Position numbers and translations under genes: made by a program | The notes under the pieces: model-generated | Seen by the model: the letters and a program-made list of their open reading frames with translations, nothing else | Database searches by the model: none | Told to the model about the DNA's origin: nothing | In this document: piece after piece, positions 4,170 to 51,800 of the stretch | Position numbering within the stretch: position 1 is the stretch's first letter | How the letters are laid out: each line of letters opens with the position of its first letter | Assembly (NCBI RefSeq): GCF_039654945.1 | Contig: NW_027361998.1 | Location: 4,712,001 to 4,776,000 of the forward strand | Direction of reading: 5' to 3' | DNA: 64,000 bases | Source: Dendrobates tinctorius | Taxonomy: Eukaryota

Positions 4170-5825
4170 GACAGGGGAGATTTTGAATTTCTGCAGACAC
4201 TAGTGGACACTGGACACTTTTGGATTGTGTGAGGCCCACTGAATATCAGAACGCTATGTCACAGGCTCGATGGCACAGGAGTGAAAAAAGTGACTACAGG
4301 ATAAGGGAGATTTTGAATTTCTGCAGACACTTGTGGACACTGGACACTTTTGGATTGTGTGAGGCCCACTGAATATCAGAGCGCTATGTCACAGGCTCGA
4401 TGGCACAGGTGTGAAAACAGTGACTACAGGATAAGGGAGATTTTGAATTTCTGCAGACACTAGTGGACACTGGACACTTTTGGATTGTATGAGGCCCACT
4501 GAATATCAGAGCGCTATGTCACAGGCTCGATGGCACAGGTGTGAAAAAAGTGACTACAGGATAAGGGAGATTTTGAATTTCTGCAGACACTAGTGGACAC
4601 TGGACTGTTGTGAGTTCATTTTCCCCTTCGTTACTGAGGCCCGAGGAACTCCCTCCTCTGGTAAAGAAAGGTAGTGAGCCTGATTGTCAAACACCTGAGG
4701 CTGATTATGATGACTGGCTGAGTGGAGTTACGGACTGGATATAAGGCTGCCGACGCCCTTCTGCCCTGCGGGTGATGTCTCTGTGGGATCCTTGGAGACC
4801 AGTCTGAATTCCTGCTCCTCCAAAGCTAAGTTTGCTGCTCGGCCTTTTGCTTTGGTGCTTTGACTTTGTTTTTGCTTTGTTTTTCTGGATTTCTGCCATT
4901 CCCTGCTGGGGTGTGCTGAATTCATTTAGCTCTGTCTTCTGAAAATACCTGAGTGCTGATTCAGTTTTTGAAGCCTAGCTGCTTCAGGGCCTTTTTCATA
5001 TCAGCTGGTTGGCCTATGTCTTTGATAGGGTTTTGGCAGATTGCAGACAGCAGCCTTCCTGTCCTTTGCTATCTAGGTAGTTTTGGGGCCCCGTCTTTGC
5101 TCAGTCTAGCTTTCTGTCTGTGTTAGTATTTTCATCTTGCTTCACCGTCATTATATGTTGGGGGCTGCCTATTGCTTTGGGGTCTGCTCTGGGGCAGTTT
5201 AGATTTCCCCTTTCTTTCTTTAGGCCTATGTATTTCTCCGGCTGTGATCGAGGGGTCTAGGGCATCGTAGGAACCCCCCACGGCTACTGCTAGTTGTGTT
5301 GATAGGTTCAGGGGTCTGCAATCTGATAGTTGCCAACTTCTCTGGTTTTCTGGACTTAGCATGTATTTCTGCTTTTGCCTCCTACGGTGACTCATTCATA
5401 ACACTGGACACTTTTGGATTGTGTGAGGCCCACTGAATATCAGAGCGCTATGTCACAGGCTCGATGGCACAAGTGTGAAAAAAGTGACTACAGGATAAGG
5501 GAGATTTTGAATTTCTGCACACACTAGTGGAGACTGGACACTTTTGGATTGTGTGAGGCCCACTGAATATCAGAGCGCTATGTCACAGGCTCGATGGCAC
5601 AGGTGTGAAAAAAGTGACTACAGGATAAGGGAGATTTTGAATTTCTGCAGACACTTGTGGACACTGGACACTTTTGGATTGTGTGAGGCCCACTGAATAT
5701 CAGCGCGCTATGTCACAGGCTCGATGGCACAGGTGTAAAAAAAGTGACTACAGGATAAGGGAGATTTTGAATTTCTGCAGACACTAGTGGACACTGGACA
5801 CTTTTGGATTGTGTGAGGCCCACTG
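4170..5825. repeat. 130-bp tandem repeat (~6.5 copies) interrupted by a solo LTR
   Basis: TTTTGAATTTCTGCAGACAC recurs at 4181, 4311, 4441 and 4571 and resumes after 5403. Confidence 0.95.
4606..5403 (+). mobile_element. Solo LTR (chromovirus-related family), 6-bp TSD CTGGAC
   Basis: TGTTGTGA...CATAACA termini. Similar to 13002-13799 and, in its 3' half, to the LTR starting at 23374. Confidence 0.9.
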
Positions 5826-6659
5826 ACGCTGTATGGTGTGAAAAAATGCACGCTCAGTACCTCAGAAGGACAAAAAAAAAATTGGGATTGCTTTTAAAAA
5901 AGCAGTTTGCAGAGCAGTGGGTAAACAGCAATGCAGCTGTCAGGAAGCCTTAGAAGGCAGCCTAACAACCAACACCGCTGATCCACCACAATATAGCCTC
6001 CCCTTGCACTGCACACACAGTGACTGGTGTGTTGTACAGGCAAAATCGCTAGCAGCAGAAGCAGTTTTTTTTTCTTCTTCCCTGCCTAACGCTCTCCCTA
6101 CAGAATCAGCAACCTCTCCCTATGCTAAGATCGGCAGAAGTAAGATGGCGGTCGGCGTGCACGCCCTTTTATAACCCCTGTGACGCCCACCAAAGCAAGC
6201 CAATCACTTGCATGCCCTTCTGAAAGATGGTGGTGACCCCTGTCTATGTCATCACGTTGCCCACAGTGTCCGTGGATCCTGATTGGCTGAAAAAGAGCGC
6301 AAAACAAACTTTTGAAACGCGACTGTGGCCGACCTCATCCTAGGGTCGGGTTTCGTTTCATGAAACCCGACTTTGCCAAAAGTCGGTGACTTTTGAAATT
6401 TTTCGACCCGTTTCGCTCAACTCTACTATCAATACAAAATTGTGAAAAGTTCCTTTGAAACTATGTCAACTAAAAGAGATTGAAAAATAGAAAGAGTCCA
6501 CATGTTGCTGGTCATGTTGCTTTGCTTTAATCAAATATATGCAAAAAGACCTGACATTTTACCGAGGTGAGATGAGAATACAGTTTTTGTTTTTATATTT
6601 GAGAGATACTTGTTCTATAGAGCACAAATATTTCCATCCGGCTTCTGACCGCAAAAAAG

Positions 6660-6725
6660 ATTTGCATAGAAATCAATCAGACTGGAAGAATTTCCATGAG
6701 TAATGGGCACAAATTGACTATAAAG
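6660..6725 (+). promoter_or_regulatory. TAS2R promoter cassette: octamer ATTTGCAT, ATTTCCATGAGTAAT, TATA
   Basis: Octamer at 6660, second motif at 6690, TATAAAG at 6719. The same order and spacing occur before the other two TAS2Rs. Confidence 0.7.
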
Positions 6726-6812
6726 AAGCCCAGATCATCTGTTCCGTAGACAAAACTTTGGGACAAGACCAGACAGGAGAGTGTTCACCTTCCAGTAGGG
6801 TTATTCTCTCAG

Positions 6813-7721
6813 ATGATGATGGAAGGTTGTGTCCAATATATTCTCGCAGCTCTGCTCTTCATGAAATGTCTGGTGGGGTTCACAGTTAATCTGATTTTGC
6901 TTGCTGCTAATTTTATAAAATGGAAAACCCACAAATCACTTAAGACCTCTGATAAGATCCTGTGCTCCTTGGCAATTTCAAGACTCGTAAGTTTTTCATT
7001 TATCGCTTTGTGGAATTTTTTCCTTCAATTCTCTCCATGGCTATTGGAAAATTATAATGTGATCTTAACCCTATATGTTACGGTTATGTTCATGTTCTAC
7101 AGTAGTCAGTCCTTTGCCACCGTCCTCTGCGTCTTCTACTGCGTGAAAATTGTAACCTACAACTGTAAGCTACTCTTCTTCCTGAAGACCAAGATCTCCA
7201 CAATGGTCCCATGGTTGATTCGCACCTCCCTGCTAATTTCACTGATTTCCAGCCTTCCATTTGGTTGGTTAGGTTATGACTTGAGGCTTCAGAAATTATC
7301 AAATTTTTCTACTGAAAATATAACAGAATATAGACTTGTTTTTCTTCCTAAAAATATTGAGCAGTACATTATATTCACTGTAGGATCCATTCCACCATTT
7401 CTATTGTTTTGTATCGCCAACTCCCTGTTAATTCAGTTCCTTGTATTTCACACCGGACGGATGAAGAGCATGGAGTCACATATTCAAAGACCAAATTTAA
7501 AGCGTCATTTTACTGCCTTGAAAAGTACAAGCTTATTTTTACTTTTGCAGATGATGTCATTGCTATGTATAAGTTTATCCTTTTTTGATAGATTCTTTAA
7601 TTTCAAGTTTTCGATCTATATTCGTTGGCTGATACTATTTAGCCCCATGTTATTCCATTCCTTGTACCTGATCTATTCCAGCAGTGAGTTAAGGAAGATA
7701 TTTGTCTTGATGTCTTGTTGA
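6813..7721 (+). CDS. TAS2R: Bitter taste receptor, type 2 (TAS2R family), intact, 302 aa
   Basis: Intronless 7-TM ORF with TAS2R motifs: SDKILCSLAISR (TM2), FATVLCVFYCVKI (TM3), FFLKTKI, ECL2 sequon NFS, HxxxM (ICL3), HFTALK (TM6), FHSLYLI (TM7). AATAAA at 7854. Confidence 0.95.
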   Translation: MMMEGCVQYILAALLFMKCLVGFTVNLILLAANFIKWKTHKSLKTSDKILCSLAISRLVSFSFIALWNFFLQFSPWLLENYNVILTLYVTVMFMFYSSQSFATVLCVFYCVKIVTYNCKLLFFLKTKISTMVPWLIRTSLLISLISSLPFGWLGYDLRLQKLSNFSTENITEYRLVFLPKNIEQYIIFTVGSIPPFLLFCIANSLLIQFLVFHTGRMKSMESHIQRPNLKRHFTALKSTSLFLLLQMMSLLCISLSFFDRFFNFKFSIYIRWLILFSPMLFHSLYLIYSSSELRKIFVLMSC

Positions 7722-10700
7722 CTTTTCAGATGTTCCTGACGGATAATTTCACTGACAATTTCTGTTGACAATTCCACTTTCCTTCAAAAACGTTATTATG
7801 TGATTAAAATTTCCATTCAATGTTTGTGTAACTCTTCCATCCATCGATATATTAATAAACTGCAGCATGCATCTTAGGTAGCATAGCATTATTAGGTAAG
7901 CAATTAAATAATTTTCGTCTTTTTGCCTTAGTTACTCTGTAAATACAGTGACACAATGGTTTTTAATTGCTTGTTTTAATGGAACTAGTTCTGGTTTTCT
8001 GAGGTTTCATTTTGGGGCTTTATATTTTAGTGTTTCATTTAAATTTTGTCACAATTTCTACTATTTGCTGAAAGTTCAGGTTTCTATGTTTTTTAATATT
8101 GTATGTTTTAAATAATAATAATAAAATGGAATTACACTTGACTATTGTCCAGATTTGTTGTTCTGCGTCATAGTGTAAGGGTCCACCAGGACCATAGTCG
8201 TAGGCGAGGACACCGGGGCTCTGGTGTCCTAGCCTCCCCTCACAGAAACATCACATTCACCATTTGTCAGCATACCTGTGCCTTCAGCTCCAGCTACTCC
8301 GGATTCTCCTTTCCGCTGTGGGAAATCCTCTCCAAATTGGTCAGAAGAAACTGAGACACTTAAACAATAACATCTTTACTGTTTTTTTTGCACAGCGCAT
8401 CCACAGACTTCACATTCTTTATTATAACAGGCGTCACCAAACAATGTTCCTTTTCTTTCCCTGCACTACTTTCATAGTCACAAAGAGCATACCCAGATCT
8501 GACCATCCCTGATGGTTCCTCAACAGATTCTCTGTGCAGCTTTACTACGGGTATGCGTCTCCCAGTCTTTTTCGCACCGGACACAAGATTATTATTCTCA
8601 GTATAAAACCACTGTAAGAGACTTCTGCCCTTCTGTGCTGCCTGCTGACTTTGTACTACATCTTTACTGTACGTTCTCACTGCTTCCGTGGGGTCCCTGG
8701 ACCGTTTTGCCCCAGCTCCCAGGGTTTCTGCCCAAGCAATGAGGTGCCACATCTATAATCTTCTCCAACTGTTCTAGCCTGCTGATTTTACTTTACCGTA
8801 GCTGTGGATGGCTGGGGTTGTCTTCATTACAGGTTGCGTGACTGCTGTGGTGTCCTGGGCCTATAGCCCATGTGTTCGGTTCGGGCGTCCCTGCCCTCTG
8901 ATCCTAATCTTTCCTGTGTCTAGCCTTACCACACAGGGGGAATGAAGAGAAAAGCAACATGCCCACAAACTGGGAACACCACAAAATGTAAAATAATTAA
9001 CAATGTTTATTAATTACAAAAGGCACATACAAGAGAAAACACACAATTTCCATAAAAACATTTAAAAACATGAAACATGAACTAGCCATGCCGTATGATA
9101 AGGCAATGACTCACCCACACCTAATCCCACACAGCCTAAATACGCAAAGCAGGCTCCAAATAAATAACCAGAACAATTAATATATAATCAGAAAAATTTG
9201 AAAATCTATTATATTAGTGGAGCCACCCAAACATATGTTATATATAGCTATTCACACCACCATATAATAAGCTGAAACTGGAAAAGAAGGCTAGCCTGAT
9301 CAAAGTGATGAAAAATGCTTGATGACAAAGCCAATAAAGACCAAGGCGTTAGCATAAAGTATATAAAGTATATAAGGAAGCAGCCAATCCTAGTCCTGTG
9401 GTGTAATAGAAATAGAGCCGCCCAAAACTTGCAAGCTCTTAGAAGAAAAATTGCACAAATCAATTGAAGAGCCATAAATGCTGCAGGGAATAGAGGGGGG
9501 GTGCAAACCCCATGCATATAGCCACAACCACTGTGGCTTCCTCAGGGGAAAATGGTGTGCTAGACTGTGCATGTGACGAATATCTATATAAGATTCATAT
9601 GTGGAAATCAATTAAATAATCAAAGAAGTTACTAACCATGGAAACCAGGGAAACTGCAGGGCGGCAGCCATCTTGTCAGTGTCATTGTACGCCAAATATC
9701 AATAAAGTTGGTTGCAAGGCCATATTGAGCGTGCGCCGAGAGAACAGATACATAGCGCATGCACAGATATCAATGAGACGTGCCTGCACCATGAAGAGTA
9801 GTGGATACGAGGTGGCATGAAAACATACTCAAATTACAAATATATTGGCAATAAGTAACATATGATGCACACTAATTAAATTTTCCTCTTAGAACCAAAC
9901 TGCGCATGCGCCAAAGAAGGTAAGTATGGCGCGTGCACCAATAAGACACCCGATCTGCAGGCGCCCAGAATGAAAGCTCACTTATAAGAAACATAATTAC
10001 ACCAAAATTGAATAAAACAATGACGAGTGGTGCATAATTAGTTATGCATACAAACTATCTAAACCCTGAAGAGATAAATAGATTATATTGTGCTAATAGG
10101 CATTCGGTGTATAGCGTAACCACAGATACAATATATTGCGCATGCACCCCAAAAGTTTTTTTGTTTAAGGACCAAAACAAACATGCGCCAAAAATAAGAT
10201 TGAAAAGGGCGCTAGCATGGATGAGACGTATAGTGTGTCGACGCCAAAAAGATAATCAAAGAACAATTGCGCCAAAGTGACTGAAGTTTGATATAAGAAA
10301 TAAGCGCAGATACAATATACTGCGCATGCGCCCAAAATATTTTTGTATCTTGAGACCAAAATGAACATGCGCAAACAAAACTTAACATGGCGTTAGCATA
10401 GATAGTTATATATGATAGAAAAATTCAAATATGATGAATACTCAATTACAATAAAAGCAGTATCTTGGATGACGTCAAAAACTAACACTATAAGATGTAT
10501 AACACAAAAATATAAAAAGCACGTACATATGATGTGTTTGCAGGTCGTGCAAAAGATGCTGCCTCAAAGAAACAATTCTATGGACACGCATGAATAAAGT
10601 AGTGCACATACAGTTGAGGGATACGACCGAATTCTACCATTATGGATACATGTTCACCAAACTCATAAAAGAAAAAAGATAGAATGGCCAACTGGTTTGT

Positions 10701-14425: not shown

Positions 14426-14600
14426 ATAATAGTTTAGGCGTAGTCCAACTATTTAACGTTGCGGTCAGTATTTTCAGCAACCTAAGTTCTAAAATGACAT
14501 TTTTTACTGAAACAAGTGTAAAGTTGTGGTTTCTCTTATTTACGTGTTGTTTGATCTGCTGAGCACTTATACTTCCAACTAGTTACAGACCGGATTAACG

Positions 14601-14667
14601 ATTTGCATGGAAGTCAACCATACTCAAAGAATTTACATGAGTAATGGACATAAAACAACTGTAAAAA
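14601..14667 (+). promoter_or_regulatory. TAS2R promoter cassette with a mutated TATA (TGTAAAA)
   Basis: ATTTGCAT at 14601, ATTTACATGAGTAAT at 14631, TGTAAAAA at 14660. Confidence 0.65.
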
Positions 14668-14707: not shown

Positions 14708-15615
14708 ATGAAAGTTTCTATCCAATATGTTTTTGCAGCTGTGGTCATTATAAAATGTCTGGTGGGACTCACAGTAAATCTGATTATTCTGGCTGTCAGT
14801 TTCATGAAATGGAAAAGTCTGAAATCTTTTAAGACTTGCGATAAGATCCTCAGCTCCTTGGCAATTTCCAGAGTCCTGTATTTTTCCAGCATCATTTTGC
14901 GGAACTCGACAGAGTTTTTCCATGGCTAAAGAAAATAAAAAGAGTGTTATCAGCCCTATACATTGTGGTCATATTCATGACGAATAGTGATCAATGGTTT
15001 GCCACCATCCTCTGTGTCTTCTACTGTGTGAAAATTGTAACCAACAAATATAAACTCTTTGCTTTCCTGAAGACCAGAATCTCCACCATGGTCCCGTGGT
15101 TGATGTTGGACTCTCTGGTGATTTTGCTGATTTCCAGTCTTCCATTAATTTGGTTTGGTTCTGACTTCAATCAGCAGAATAATTCAAATGTTTCTACTGA
15201 AAATACGATGGAAAAGAAACATATTGTGATTCTAAACTTTAATAGTCAGCTCTTGATAGACGTTTTAGGCTCCTTTCCACCATTAATAATACTCAGTGTT
15301 GCCATCATCATAATAATTCACTTCCTTCTAATTCACACCAGATGGATGAGGAGCGTTGGGTCACATAATCACAGCCCAAACTTAAAGTTTCATTTTAGTG
15401 CTTTGAAAATTATAAGCTTTCTTTTACTGCTACAGACACAGTTTTTTATTTCTATGGGTCTTTTTGATTCTGGAATATTCTTTCATTACAATTATTCAGT
15501 TTTAATTTTCTACATAATATTATGTAGCCGTCCTTTGTTCCATTGCTTGTACATTATCTCATCTGGCAATGAGCTGTTTATCTTAAAATGTCCCTGTGTT
15601 AGGAAACATTCTTAA
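14708..15615 (+). pseudogene. TAS2R: TAS2R pseudogene (net 4-nt deletion after TM2)
   Basis: ORFs 14708-14929 and 14944-15615 together align with the 51842 gene. Between the CGG and TGG codons there are 20 nt versus 24 nt in the paralogue, giving TAA at 14927-14929. Confidence 0.9.
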
Positions 15616-46616: not shown

Positions 46617-47447
46617 TATAAAGAAGTATAGTTTCTAAAATGGGGACACTTGTGGGGGTTTCTGCTGTTTTGTGACATGGCATCCGCAATATGCTCCAGC
46701 CAAAATTGCACTCCAGAAATTTATTGGTGGTGCTCTTTCCCTTACGATCCCTGCCAAAACAGTAGATTTCCAACACATGTGAGGTATCGGTGTACTGATG
46801 ACAAATTGCACAAACCATTTTTTCAGTCCATTTTCTGATGTTACCTTTATGAAAGTGAAAGATTTGGGGCTGAAGCAACATTTTTGTGTGAAAGATGTAT
46901 TTCTTCATTGTCACAACTAGTGTTGAGCATTCCGATACCGCAAGTATCGGGTATCGGCCGATACTTGCTGTATCGGAATTCCGATACCGACTTCCGATAT
47001 TTTTTTAATATCGGAATTCGGCATCGGAATCGGAAGTTCAGTTGATTGACGGCCTGACGTCATCATGATGCGCGGTGTGTGCGCATCATGATGCGCCGTC
47101 ATTTCGGGCCTTCCGGGGGTCTCTGCCGGCCTGCCGGGGGGCTGTGCCGGCCTGCCGGGGGGCTGTGCCGGCCTGCCGGGGGGCTGTGTGGACTGCCCGG
47201 GGTCTGTACCGGCCTGCCGGGGGGCTGTGCCGGCCTGCCGGTGGTCTGTGCACCCTGTGGGGGTCTGTACCGGCCTGCCGGGGGGCTGTGCCGGCCTGCC
47301 GGGGGGCTGTGCTGATGTCCGGGGGTCTGTGCAAGCATCGTCCGATGGGACTACAAGTCCCATCGGGCGATGCCTGCTACCATGACAGTGATTGACACAT
47401 TAGCCAATGATGGGACAGTAGTAGTCCCATCATCCGGCTAATGTGTT

Positions 47448-47477
<30 letters not shown>

Positions 47478-47478
<1 letters not shown>

Positions 47479-48365
47479 TACTACATACATACTACATGCT
47501 ACATACATACTACATATATACTACATACATACTACATACATGCTACATACATACTACATGCATGCTACATACATACTACATATATACTACATACATACTA
47601 CATACATACTGCATGCTACATACATACTACATACATACTACATACATACTACATGCATGCTACATATATACTACATGCTACATACATACCACATACATAC
47701 TACATGCATGCTACATATATACTACATGCTACATACATACCACATACATACTACATACATGCTACATATATACTACATACATACCACATACATACTACAT
47801 ACATGCTACATACATACTACATACATACTACATGCATGCTACATACATACTACATACATACTACATGCATGCTACATACATGCTACATACATACTACATG
47901 CTACATACATACTACATATATACTACATACATACTACATATATACTACATACATACTACATACATACCACATATATACTACATACATACTACATGCATGC
48001 TACATACATACTACATGCTACATACATACCACATACATACTACATACATGCTACATATATACTACATGCATGCTACATACATACTACATATATACTACAT
48101 GCATGCTACATACATACTGCATGCTACATGCATGCTACATACATACTACATACATACTACATGCATGCTACATACATACTACATGCTACATACATACCAC
48201 ATACATACTACATACATGCTACATATATACTACATGCATGCTACATACATACTACATATATACTACATGCATGCTACATACATACTACATGCTACATGCA
48301 TGCTACATACATACTACATACATACTACATGCTACATACATACCACATATATACTACATACATAC
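47478..48365. repeat. Compound TACA/TAC/CATG microsatellite (left arm)
   Basis: Low-complexity units such as ACTACATACAT and GCTACATGCAT. Confidence 0.97.
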
Positions 48366-49039
48366 AATACATTCATACAATACATACATAGACATACAGT
48401 ACATATAACATAGAGTAACATACTTACCAATACTTGTCACATTGTTCCCCGAAGCCATTGTCTTTCCGGAATAAATATTAACATAACAAACCACAAAAAT
48501 ACTCACCCACGATCCGAAGCAGTCCACGAGTGTGTCCCACGACGATCTTGGGTAGAGAACGGCAGCATCAGATGATGCTGCCGTTCTCTACGGGCTGCAG
48601 GAATCCAATGACGGAAGGTAGGTATCCTTCCGCACTGTATTCCTCCGCCACTTAAAAAAAAAAAAGTCCCTAGTCTCACTTTATGCCATTGCTGTGTGGG
48701 AATTTCCCACACAGCAATGGCATAAAGTGAGACTAGGGACTTTTTTTTTTTTTAAGTGGCGGAGGAATACAGTGCGGAAGGATACCTACCTTCCGTCATT
48801 GGATTCCTGCAGCCCGTAGAGAACGGCAGCAACAGCTGATGCTGCCGTTCTCTACCCAAGATCGTCGTGGGACACACTCGTGGACTGCTTCGGATCGTGG
48901 GTGAGTATTTTTGTGGTTTGTTATGTTAATATTTATTCCGTAGACGACAATGGATTCGGGGAACAATGTGACAAGTATTGGTAAGTATGTTACTCTATGT
49001 TATATGTACTGTATGTCTATGTATGTATTGTATGAATGT

Positions 49040-49963
49040 ATTGTATGTATGTAGTATATATGTGGTATGTATGTAGCATGTAGTATGTATGTAGTATGTA
49101 TGTAGCATGCATGTAGCATGCAGTATGTATGTAGCATGCAGTATGTATGTAGCATGCATGTAGTATATATGTAGTATGTATGTAGCATGCATGTAGTATA
49201 TATGTAGCATGTATGTGGTATGTATGTAGCATGTAGTATGTATGTAGCATGCATGTAGTATGTATGTAGCATGTATGTAGTATATATGTAGTATGTATGT
49301 AGCATGTAGTATGTATGTAGCATGCATGTAGTATATATGTAGTATGTATGTAGCATGTAGTATGTATGTAGCATGCATGTAGTATATATGTAGCATGTAT
49401 GTGGTATGTATGTAGCATGTAGTATGTATGTAGCATGCATGTAGTATGTATGTAGCATGTATGTAGTATATATGTAGTATGTATGTAGTATGTATGTAGC
49501 ATGTAGTATGTATGTAGCATGCATGTAGTATATATGTAGTATGTATGTAGCATGTAGTATGTATGTAGCATGCATGTAGTATATATGTAGTATGTATGTA
49601 GCATGCATGTAGTATATATGTAGTATGTATGTAGCATGCATGTAGTATATATGTAGTATGTATGTGGTATGTATGTAGCATGTAGTATGTATGTAGTATG
49701 TATGTAGCATGTAGCATGTATGTAGCATGCATGTAGTATATATGTAGTATGTATGTGGTATGTATGTAGCATGTAGTATGTATGTAGCATGCATGTAGTA
49801 TATATGTAGTATGTATGTAGCATGTAGTATGCAGTATGTATGTAGCATGCATGTAGTATATATGTAGTATGTATGTTGCATGTAGTATGAATGTAGCATG
49901 TATGTAGTATGTAGTATGAATGTAGCATGTATGTAGTATGCATGTTGTATGTATGTAGCATGT
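49040..49963. repeat. Inverted copy of the compound microsatellite (right arm)
   Basis: ATGTATGTAGT-type units, the reverse complement of the left array. Confidence 0.97.
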
Positions 49964-51733
49964 AATTTTTTTTTTTTTTTTTTTTACATTTAACACATTA
50001 GCCGGATGATGGGACTACTACTGTCCCATTATTGGCTAATGTGTCAATCACTGTCATGGTAGCAGGCATCGCCCGATGGGACTTGTAGTCCCATCGGACG
50101 ATGCCTGCACAGACCCCCGGAGCCTGCACAGACCACCGGCAGGCCGGCACAGCCCCCCGGCAGGCCGGCACAGCCCCCCGGCAGGCCGGCACAGCCCCCC
50201 GGAGCCTGCACAGTCCCCCGGCAGGCCGGCACAGCCCCCCGGAGCCTGCACAGCCCCCCGGCAGGCCGGCACAGCCCCCCGGCAGGCCGGCACAGCCCCC
50301 CGGAGCCTGCACAGACCACCGGCAGGCCGGCACAGACCACCGGAGCCTGCACAGACCCCCTGGCAGGCCGGCACAGCCCCCCGAAAGGCCCGTACAGACC
50401 CCAGAGAGGCTGTACAAGGGCAGGAAAGGGTTTTTCTTATTCCGATACCGGAAGTCCCATAGACTTGAATGGGACTTCCGGTATCGGAATCGGCGATACC
50501 GATACTTTTTTTAAAGATCGGCCGATACCATCCGATACGATACTTTGAAGTATCGGATGGTATCGCTCAACTCTAGTCACAACTCAATCTTATAAAATTC
50601 CGTGAAGCATATCTGGGCTCACTACACCACTATCTATACCAGCCAATTTGCATTCCAAAATTCAAACAATACTCCTTCCCTCTGGATCCTTGCTGTGCAC
50701 CCAAACATTAGTTTTCTTTCACATATAGGGTATCAGCATACTCAGGAAATTTTGCATAGCAATTTTTGTATGTTTCATTTTTTCCTGATGCCCTTTTGAA
50801 AATGCAAACTTTGGGCTAAATGAACATTTTTTTGTGGGAAAAATAAAAATATTAAGGATTAATAAACTTCTTGGATGTTGTTTTGAGCACTCTGAGGGGT
50901 GCAGGTTTTAAAGTGGTGTCACTTTTTGTTTATTTTCTGTCATATACGTAGACCTCTCAAAGTCATTTCAAACATGAGGTGGTCCCTAATAAGAACGGTT
51001 TTGTAAATTTTGTAAAAAAATGAGAATGTTTCAAAAATGATGATGATGTAAAGTAGAAATGTGGGGAAATGTTATTTATACATTATTTTGTGCAGCATCA
51101 ATAACTGGTTTAGCGCTATAAAAATTGAAAGCTTAAAAATTTAAAATATTCACCAAAATTCCAATATTTTCATATATAAATGCAAAAATTTTTTTACCTA
51201 AATTTACCAGTAACATAAAGTACAACATGTCTCAAAAAAACTATCTGAGAATAACTGGGATTTATTTGAAGTGTTCCAGAGTTACTACCACATAAAGTGA
51301 CACTGGTCAGAATTGTTAAATTTGGCCTGGCCAGGATGGTGAAAAGAGGCTTCGGGGCGAAGGGAATAATGGAATCACATTTAAGCTCATTGTGTCGGGA
51401 ATCTCAAGCTGTAAATATGCTCTGATCCTTAGGTTAACTTCATCTGAAGAGTGACATTTTGCTTTACAGTCATTTTAGTCTGGAGTTTTATAGCCTCAAT
51501 GTGGCGCTGTATAATGTATATAAATGGAACTATTCAATAAGAATTAATCAGGATTCATTTTTGTTTTCTATCCCCAACTATTTGGTTTTGTGGTTCAGTA
51601 TTTTCAGCCACCTACGTTCTAAAATGACATTTGCTTCCTGAAACAAGTGTAAAGTTGAGTCTTCTATTCTTTGCATGTTGTTTGCTCTGGTGAGCACTTT
51701 TATATTTAAAATCAGTTACAGACCGGATTAAAG

Positions 51734-51800
51734 ATTTGCATGCAATTCAACCATACGCAAAAGAATTTACATGAGTAATGGACACAAAACAACTATAAAA
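51734..51800 (+). promoter_or_regulatory. TAS2R promoter cassette: octamer, ATTTACATGAGTAAT, TATA
   Basis: ATTTGCAT at 51734, ATTTACAT at 51765, TATAAAA at 51794. Confidence 0.7.

Follow-up and report, generated by a model that had tools for sequence, protein, structure and literature searches.

A conserved octamer upstream of frog, caecilian, turtle and gecko TAS2R genes and the candidate POU-driven promoter around it

An octamer at a taste-receptor gene is already known from TAS1R4, where a conserved ATGCAAAT lies 5′ of the ORF across distant vertebrates and emerged as the top de novo motif and a candidate Skn-1a/POU2F3 site (Nishihara et al. 2023, PMC10781636). Oct sites were not seen in the other novel TAS1Rs (PMC10781636). 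The TAS2R genes analyzed here resemble TAS1R4 in carrying ATGCAAAT upstream of a taste-receptor ORF in distant vertebrate classes, again as the top motif, in our case of an 8-mer enumeration. They differ from it in that TAS1R4 is a single gene of an unrelated receptor family, the class C T1Rs, whereas the octamer described here precedes many members of a rapidly duplicating family and is accompanied by a second conserved element, box 2, and a TATA box at set distances.

Immunoglobulin (Ig) V promoters, which are served by Oct-1/Oct-2 and OCA-B, offer another parallel, being compact octamer-plus-TATA promoters that are copied whenever a member of their large tandem family duplicates. The octamer of light-chain V promoters reads ATTTGCAT on the coding strand, as in the TAS2Rs, and a further, putative likeness would be a coactivator that needs adenine at position 5 of the octamer. 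The geometry is different. Octamer and TATA are roughly 30–40 bp apart in Ig promoters, whereas the TAS2R cassette spans 59–60 bp from octamer to TATA and has a second conserved box in between. The cell type also differs, as presumably does the POU paralogue.

The POU2F3/OCA-T1/2 elements of tuft cells and tuft-like small cell lung cancer share with the TAS2R sites a perfect octamer with adenine 5, and OCA-T coactivators of POU2F3 require an octamer with that adenine (PMC12755459). POU2F3 determines the lineage of bitter, sweet and umami cells (Matsumoto 2011, as summarized in PMC10239704 and PMC10781636), and in mammals TAS2Rs mark the chemosensory lineage that depends on POU2F3. The POU2F3/OCA-T1/2 elements differ in being mostly enhancers mapped by ChIP or CUT&RUN in human cells, in work that does not discuss TAS2R promoters (PMC12755459), whereas the TAS2R sites are predicted ones. 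Our literature search found neither an octamer nor any other conserved promoter module reported for TAS2R genes, and promoters are not discussed in a 2025 survey of amphibian TAS2Rs or in a 2025 bitter-receptor review. The TAS2R octamer module therefore appears to be new, with TAS1R4 as its precedent.

The window and its three TAS2R genes

The window, by which we mean the whole 64,000-nt stretch of Dendrobates tinctorius DNA that was analyzed, contains three TAS2R genes, all on the + strand (Table 1). Genes 1 and 3 each consist of a single-exon ORF of about 300 aa with a full-length PF05296 match, the combination by which we recognized TAS2Rs. The proteins nearest to gene 1 are frog TAS2Rs, the closest being one from Ranitomeya imitator (81–83% identity). 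Gene 2 is an apparent pseudogene, because it carries a 4-bp deletion relative to gene 3 followed by a stop at 14927. A previous, sequence-only reading of this DNA had described an octamer, an octamer-like box and a TATA box before three TAS2R genes. Pfam supports the identity of the genes downstream, with the qualification that gene 2 is frameshifted. The distance from cassette to ATG is 107–153 bp in all three genes. The pseudogene retains a perfect octamer and box 2, with TGTAAA at the position of the TATA box.

Table 1. Positions of the TAS2R genes and of the upstream features in the window.
Feature	Position	Strand	Basis or remark
TAS2R gene 1, intact, 302 aa	6813..7721	+	Pfam PF05296, E 4.7e-38
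TAS2R gene 2, apparent pseudogene	14708..15615	+	4-bp deletion near 14910, stop 14927-14929
TAS2R gene 3, intact, 297 aa	51842..52735	+	Pfam PF05296, E 1.4e-36
Conserved proximal promoter block (candidate), gene 1	6620..6735	+	blastn to genes 2/3; nhmmer
Second, weaker conserved block	6550..6589	+	about 100 bp 5′ of gene 1 octamer; counterparts near 14500-14540, 51625-51665
Octamer ATTTGCAT (reverse complement ATGCAAAT), gene 1	6660..6667	+	sequence match; top enriched 8-mer
Octamer, gene 2	14601..14608	+	perfect match
Octamer, gene 3	51734..51741	+	perfect match
Box 2 (GA-ATTTCCATGAGTAATGG; octamer-like ATTTNCAT, then GAG + TAAT), gene 1	6688..6706	+	29 bp 5′ of TATA
Box 2, gene 2	14629..14647	+	17-mer match
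Box 2, gene 3	51763..51781	+	17-mer match
TATA box (TATAAAG), gene 1	6719..6725	+	94 bp 5′ of ATG
Degenerate TATA (TGTAAAA), gene 2	14660..14666	+	
TATA box (TATAAAA), gene 3	51794..51800	+	48 bp 5′ of ATG
Predicted initiator region TAGACA, inferred	6747..6752	+	28-33 bp after TATA first T

A perfect ATTTGCAT occurs on the + strand at exactly the three positions previously given for it, 6660, 14601 and 51734, and box 2 follows each of these octamers by the 30–31 bp that had been claimed. The 17-mer ATTT[AC]CATGAGTAATGG, allowing at most 3 mismatches, was found exactly three times in the window, at 6690, 14631 and 51765, where 0.51 occurrences were expected. The octamer itself is less rare. The two strands of the window together carry 10, where 5.5 would be expected, and a count of 10 was reached in 6 of 100 shuffles, so the count alone is not significant and it is the association with genes that matters. 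One-mismatch octamers also lie 5′ of the main site, as ATGCAAAA in inverted orientation at 6539–6546 (gene 1) and as CTTTGCAT at 51667–51674 (gene 3).

By blastn, genes 1 and 3 align only over 6647–6729 (78.6%) and over the coding sequence (71%), in agreement with the earlier observation that the wider flanks of gene 1 do not align. The sole non-coding match of gene 1 to gene 2 is 6620–6735 (76%). Genes 2 and 3 are more alike, and their shared homology begins 263 bp 5′ of the ATG. Retrotransposon gag/protease ORFs occupy intergenic DNA between the TAS2R genes, and between genes 2 and 3 (47443–49996) there are mirror-image ORFs on the two strands, at 47443–48413 (+) and 48995–49996 (−). Upstream of gene 1, a high-copy repeat at 5800–6447 turned up in numerous contigs from each of three small same-species runs. 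A search of sequencing runs listed no RNA run containing the gene, and the contigs of the three runs matched this repeat only, with none on 6448–8200, and repeat coverage ended sharply at about 6447, some 210 bp 5′ of the gene 1 octamer. Given this boundary and the lack of alignment beyond the cassette, the cassette sits in a small island of retained DNA.

The octamer among sampled TAS2R genes

The comparison set comprised 24 TAS2R genes from 13 species, namely the genes of the window and 21 fetched genes from 12 species, which were picked by protein similarity and not by promoter content; the sample is one of amphibians and sauropsids. Frogs were represented by Ranitomeya, Hyla, Eleutherodactylus, Engystomops (three genes), Ascaphus, Spea, Xenopus and Rana, and other groups by the caecilian Rhinatrema, the turtle Mauremys, the sparrow Zonotrichia and the gecko Heteronotia. 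A protein profile search with two bird sequences returned almost only birds, and one sparrow locus was used.

We scored all canonical 8-mers within the 400 bp preceding the ATG across 21 independent groups, with close copies collapsed, against the remaining non-genic DNA of the same loci. The octamer ATGCAAAT/ATTTGCAT ranked first among the 6220 observed 8-mers, occurring in 15 of the 21 groups where 1.10 were expected (P = 1.9e-16). 8-mers overlapping it ranked next, and the variant ATTTACAT came fifth (8 groups versus 1.19 expected). Perfect octamers were present within −400 to 0 in 17/24 genes, compared with 1/24, 3/24 and 1/24 in three 400-bp bins farther upstream, 1/24 in coding sequence, 1/23 at +1 to +400 after the stop and 0/23 at +401 to +800. 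Measured from the ATG, the sites range from −105 to −243 and mostly read ATTTGCAT on the coding strand, with both orientations found among Xenopus, turtle and Rana. An eighteenth gene, the first Engystomops TAS2R, has its octamer at −489 as a result of a minisatellite insertion, and in 6/24 genes a perfect octamer was absent within 500 bp upstream. Xenopus and turtle have a second perfect octamer, inverted, 50–70 bp 5′ of the proximal octamer or octamer-like site.

The element had been proposed as a feature of the amphibian TAS2R family, a scope that is too narrow. Perfect octamers precede TAS2Rs of caecilian, turtle and gecko, and the sparrow has only the one-base variant ATTTACAT. In Xenopus, Rana, caecilian, turtle and gecko the octamer persists where nothing else aligns. 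Around the octamer, the string CAC-ATTT[GA]CAT-[CT]CCTG is common to the caecilian (L008 ~9784), turtle (L009 ~9809) and sparrow (L011 ~9803, 13536) loci; turtle and sparrow have A in place of G, which makes it ATTTACAT, a variant also found in frog box 2. These shared flanks, CAC before and YCCTG after, point to an element that predates the amphibian–amniote split. Judged by the sequences sampled, the element is broader and older than first proposed.

Conservation and spacing of the cassette

Nine frog copies of the cassette were aligned, and identities were calculated as pairwise means. Over seven independent copies the octamer reached 0.96 and box 2 0.76; the spacers fell to 0.50–0.52 and the flanks (25 bp before the octamer and about 38 bp after TATA) to 0.41–0.42. 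The TATA box, scored in neobatrachians only, reached 0.72. Over the frog comparisons as a whole the ranges are 0.76–0.81 for box 2, 0.50–0.55 for spacers and 0.41–0.47 for flanks. The expectation that the motifs would be better conserved than neighbouring bases was thus borne out. An alignment of six independent genes, Ascaphus among them, covered 1.4 kb of upstream and coding sequence; no 8-nt window in it was more conserved than the octamer, and the only ones to equal it were three in the most conserved coding stretch (7125–7163). Fourfold-degenerate sites compared with Ascaphus are near saturation (identity 0.30–0.46), and those of neobatrachian paralogues are still 54–80% identical. For this reason we discarded the argument that the neobatrachian block must be constrained because it aligns; alignability proves little here, and the case for constraint rests on the contrast between motifs and spacers, the latter looking neutral, and on the deeply diverged taxa. 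Taken together, these data show that the octamer is restricted to 100–250 bp before the ATG, selectively conserved and ancient. They also support the view that the cassette is a conserved cis-element that accompanies each gene copy.

An nhmmer profile of the cassette, searched on both strands of the window and all loci (327 kb), matched only upstream of TAS2R genes, with the gene 1 match at 6657–6730 (E 1.5e-19). Over these 327 kb the cassette is therefore not a dispersed repeat, and a transposon as its carrier was rejected. The search also recovered a copy on which the profile had not been trained, 492 bp before the first Engystomops TAS2R (E 1.8e-5); its octamer is perfect, and a degenerate version of box 2 follows after exactly 30 bp. 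At this locus (Engystomops pustulosus, L004 4290–4790) a minisatellite of about 350 bp with a unit of about 16 bp separates the cassette (octamer at 4292) from the ATG.

The second, weaker block upstream of gene 1 aligns with gene 2, gene 3, Hyla and Eleutherodactylus. Over the 200 bp before the octamer, gene 1 and Hyla align with z = 10.5, and the string TGACATTT of this block occurs in 6 groups versus 0.84 expected. Between TATA and ATG, an CAGGAGAG element was seen at 6782–6792 and at homologous places in L002, L003 and L004 (Engystomops), that is, in 5 independent groups versus 0.6 expected; it is missing from genes 2 and 3, together with about 52 bp. We also considered AP-1-like (TGAGTAA), PBX-HOX-like (ATCAATCA, spacer 1) and ETS-like (GGAAGT) sites and set them aside because their bases are not conserved among copies.

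Box 2 has a narrower distribution than the octamer. Apart from Ascaphus, only the neobatrachian genes nearest to the window's own showed it, and it was not seen in the sampled Rana, Xenopus, Spea or non-frog genes. Ascaphus keeps it weakly, with 12/16 positions matching at the same 30-bp offset from an intact octamer, a match whose P, once offsets are allowed for, is roughly 1e-3. An old origin is probable for box 2 too, on thinner evidence than for the octamer.

Within the window the octamer-to-box-2 distance is 30, 30 and 31 bp, which had suggested a positionally fixed pair about three helical turns apart that might bind cooperatively. Outside the window this spacing breaks down, to 25 bp in Ranitomeya (through a 5-bp deletion), 35 in Hyla, 39 in Eleutherodactylus, 31 and 30 in Engystomops and 30 in Ascaphus. 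A spread of 25–39 bp rules out strict helical phasing of the two POU-like sites. The fixed three-turn spacing is instead a product of recent common descent, which predicts identical distances within the window, so that their agreement is not independent evidence. Box 2 and TATA, by comparison, are 28–29 bp apart in 8/8 neobatrachian copies, and 39 bp, or 10 bp more, in Ascaphus. The geometrically constrained pair is box 2 and TATA, not octamer and box 2.

The TATA box had been placed 59–60 bp after the octamer in all three genes. This is true of TATAAA in gene 1 (59) and gene 3 (60), and gene 2 has TGTAAA there instead. TATAAA is also present in Ranitomeya and Hyla, and TGTAAA in one intact Engystomops gene. 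About 29 bp after TATA, most neobatrachian copies have YAGACA or TATACA, which is absent in Hyla and in the third Engystomops gene. From TATA to ATG conservation is patchy, without a conserved splice acceptor.

A candidate promoter and its reader

These observations led us to propose, with somewhat better than even confidence, that the cassette is a proximal TATA promoter that each TAS2R copy carries, that it is POU-driven, and that POU2F3 with OCA-T is its likeliest reader. The proposal combines a predicted start site, a presumed promoter role and a candidate factor, which differ in strength. On the sequence evidence, the promoter reading is quite likely and the reading of the octamer by a class II POU factor is rather likely; that the factor is POU2F3 specifically is a tentative assignment, to which we give slightly less than even weight. 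In this proposal, TATA would set the start about 30 bp downstream, near 6748 for gene 1 and 51822 for gene 3, with a predicted unspliced leader of about 18–64 nt. A POU-domain factor would occupy the octamer, a perfect, high-affinity site (ATGCAAAT on the opposite strand) that lies about 60 bp 5′ of TATA, and a second POU molecule or a homeodomain-type partner would occupy box 2, the octamer-like ATTTNCAT plus GAG-TAAT that sits between octamer and TATA at its rigid 28–29 bp from the latter. Acting together, the two factors would bring coactivators to the machinery bound at TATA, in the manner of octamer factors at immunoglobulin V promoters. The likeliest octamer reader in chemosensory cells would be POU2F3 with OCA-T coactivators, and tandem duplicates that keep about 110 bp may thereby be expressed in the bitter/tuft-type lineage. 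A depletion of upstream ATGs in the predicted leader (6 in 548 nt versus 32 in 900 nt 5′ of the predicted start) was dropped as evidence because the motifs themselves contain ATG.

That the cassette is a functionless, neutral remnant copied along with gene duplications is highly improbable and already close to refuted. Common descent would predict the identical spacing within the window, and neobatrachian fourfold-site divergence of about 35% is near the overall identity of the cassette. Neutrality does not, however, account for an octamer at 0.96 beside adjacent spacers at 0.50, for octamer conservation equal to that of the best coding motif, or for an octamer that survives in Ascaphus, where synonymous sites are saturated, and in the unalignable upstream regions of Xenopus, Rana, caecilian, turtle and gecko. 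Nor would it place the octamer first among 8-mers (P about 2e-16) while matched flanking bins hold it in only 0–3 of 23–24 genes. It is also improbable, if less so, that the cassette is functional without being a core promoter, acting as a proximal enhancer, leader or first exon while transcription starts elsewhere. The start site in the promoter reading is a predicted one, several copies have an imperfect TATA, that of Ascaphus is 10 bp farther from box 2, and cassette and ATG are separated by a minisatellite of about 350 bp in one Engystomops gene and by 209 bp in another. Against this stand the TATA or TATA-like string 28–29 bp from box 2 in 8/8 neobatrachian copies, most of them with an initiator-like string about 29 bp on, and the patchy conservation and lack of a conserved splice acceptor between TATA and ATG. 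An octamer in either orientation (Xenopus, turtle, Rana) suits a DNA-level site better than an RNA element, and ATG triplets in the cassette would be upstream start codons if it were transcribed.

A rather unlikely alternative, though one to be taken more seriously than these, keeps the same promoter and changes its reader to another POU protein, such as the ubiquitous POU2F1/Oct-1, or a class I, III or IV factor at box 2, with specificity coming from the second block or from distal enhancers. The consensus octamer is common to all class II POU factors, including the ubiquitous POU2F1, so the sequence does not single out POU2F3. The CAT-N3-TAAT layout of box 2, which we take to be typical of class III/IV POU sites, also counts in favor of another reader. 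Besides tongue, frog liver, gut, skin and brain express TAS2Rs (PMC11798467), and expression therefore extends beyond taste tissue. In the mouse taste scATAC data the enriched POU motifs carried the labels Pou5f1 and Pit1, and motif accessibility was uncorrelated with the gene score of Pou2f3 (PMC10239704). On the other side, the same mouse study found Tas2r loci to be open selectively in type II taste cells, with an enrichment of POU motifs among the peaks of these cells (PMC10239704). No POU factor other than POU2F3 is known to be needed by the bitter, sweet and umami lineage, to the extent that Matsumoto 2011 is reported in later work. In addition, the adenine at position 5 that OCA-T recruitment needs is kept in all perfect octamers and even in every variant site (TTTTGCAT, CTTTGCAT and ATTTACAT). 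POU2F3 with OCA-T accordingly remains our preferred candidate reader of the proposed TATA promoter.

The question that these data touch is how bitter-receptor genes are activated in the correct cells. The octamer recurs from tailed frogs through to turtles and geckos and is thereby a strong and testable candidate for the switch behind taste-cell expression, and the parallel with the TAS1R4 octamer hints at a shared cis-logic of the POU2F3-dependent taste lineage. A module of about 110 bp provides a concrete target for mutation, a candidate factor in POU2F3 with OCA-T, and a small promoter for bitter-cell transgenes. At its widest, and on balance doubtful, the hypothesis is that an octamer-centred proximal promoter is the ancestral, tetrapod-wide TAS2R cis-code, at least 350 million years old and read directly by POU2F3 with OCA-T. 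Any duplicate retaining about 110 bp would in that case come on automatically in the bitter/tuft-cell lineage, and the lineage-specific, TATA-locked box 2 would tune which copies fire, or in which tissue. If true, such an ancestral cis-code would help explain how the family could grow to hundreds of genes amid transposon turnover.
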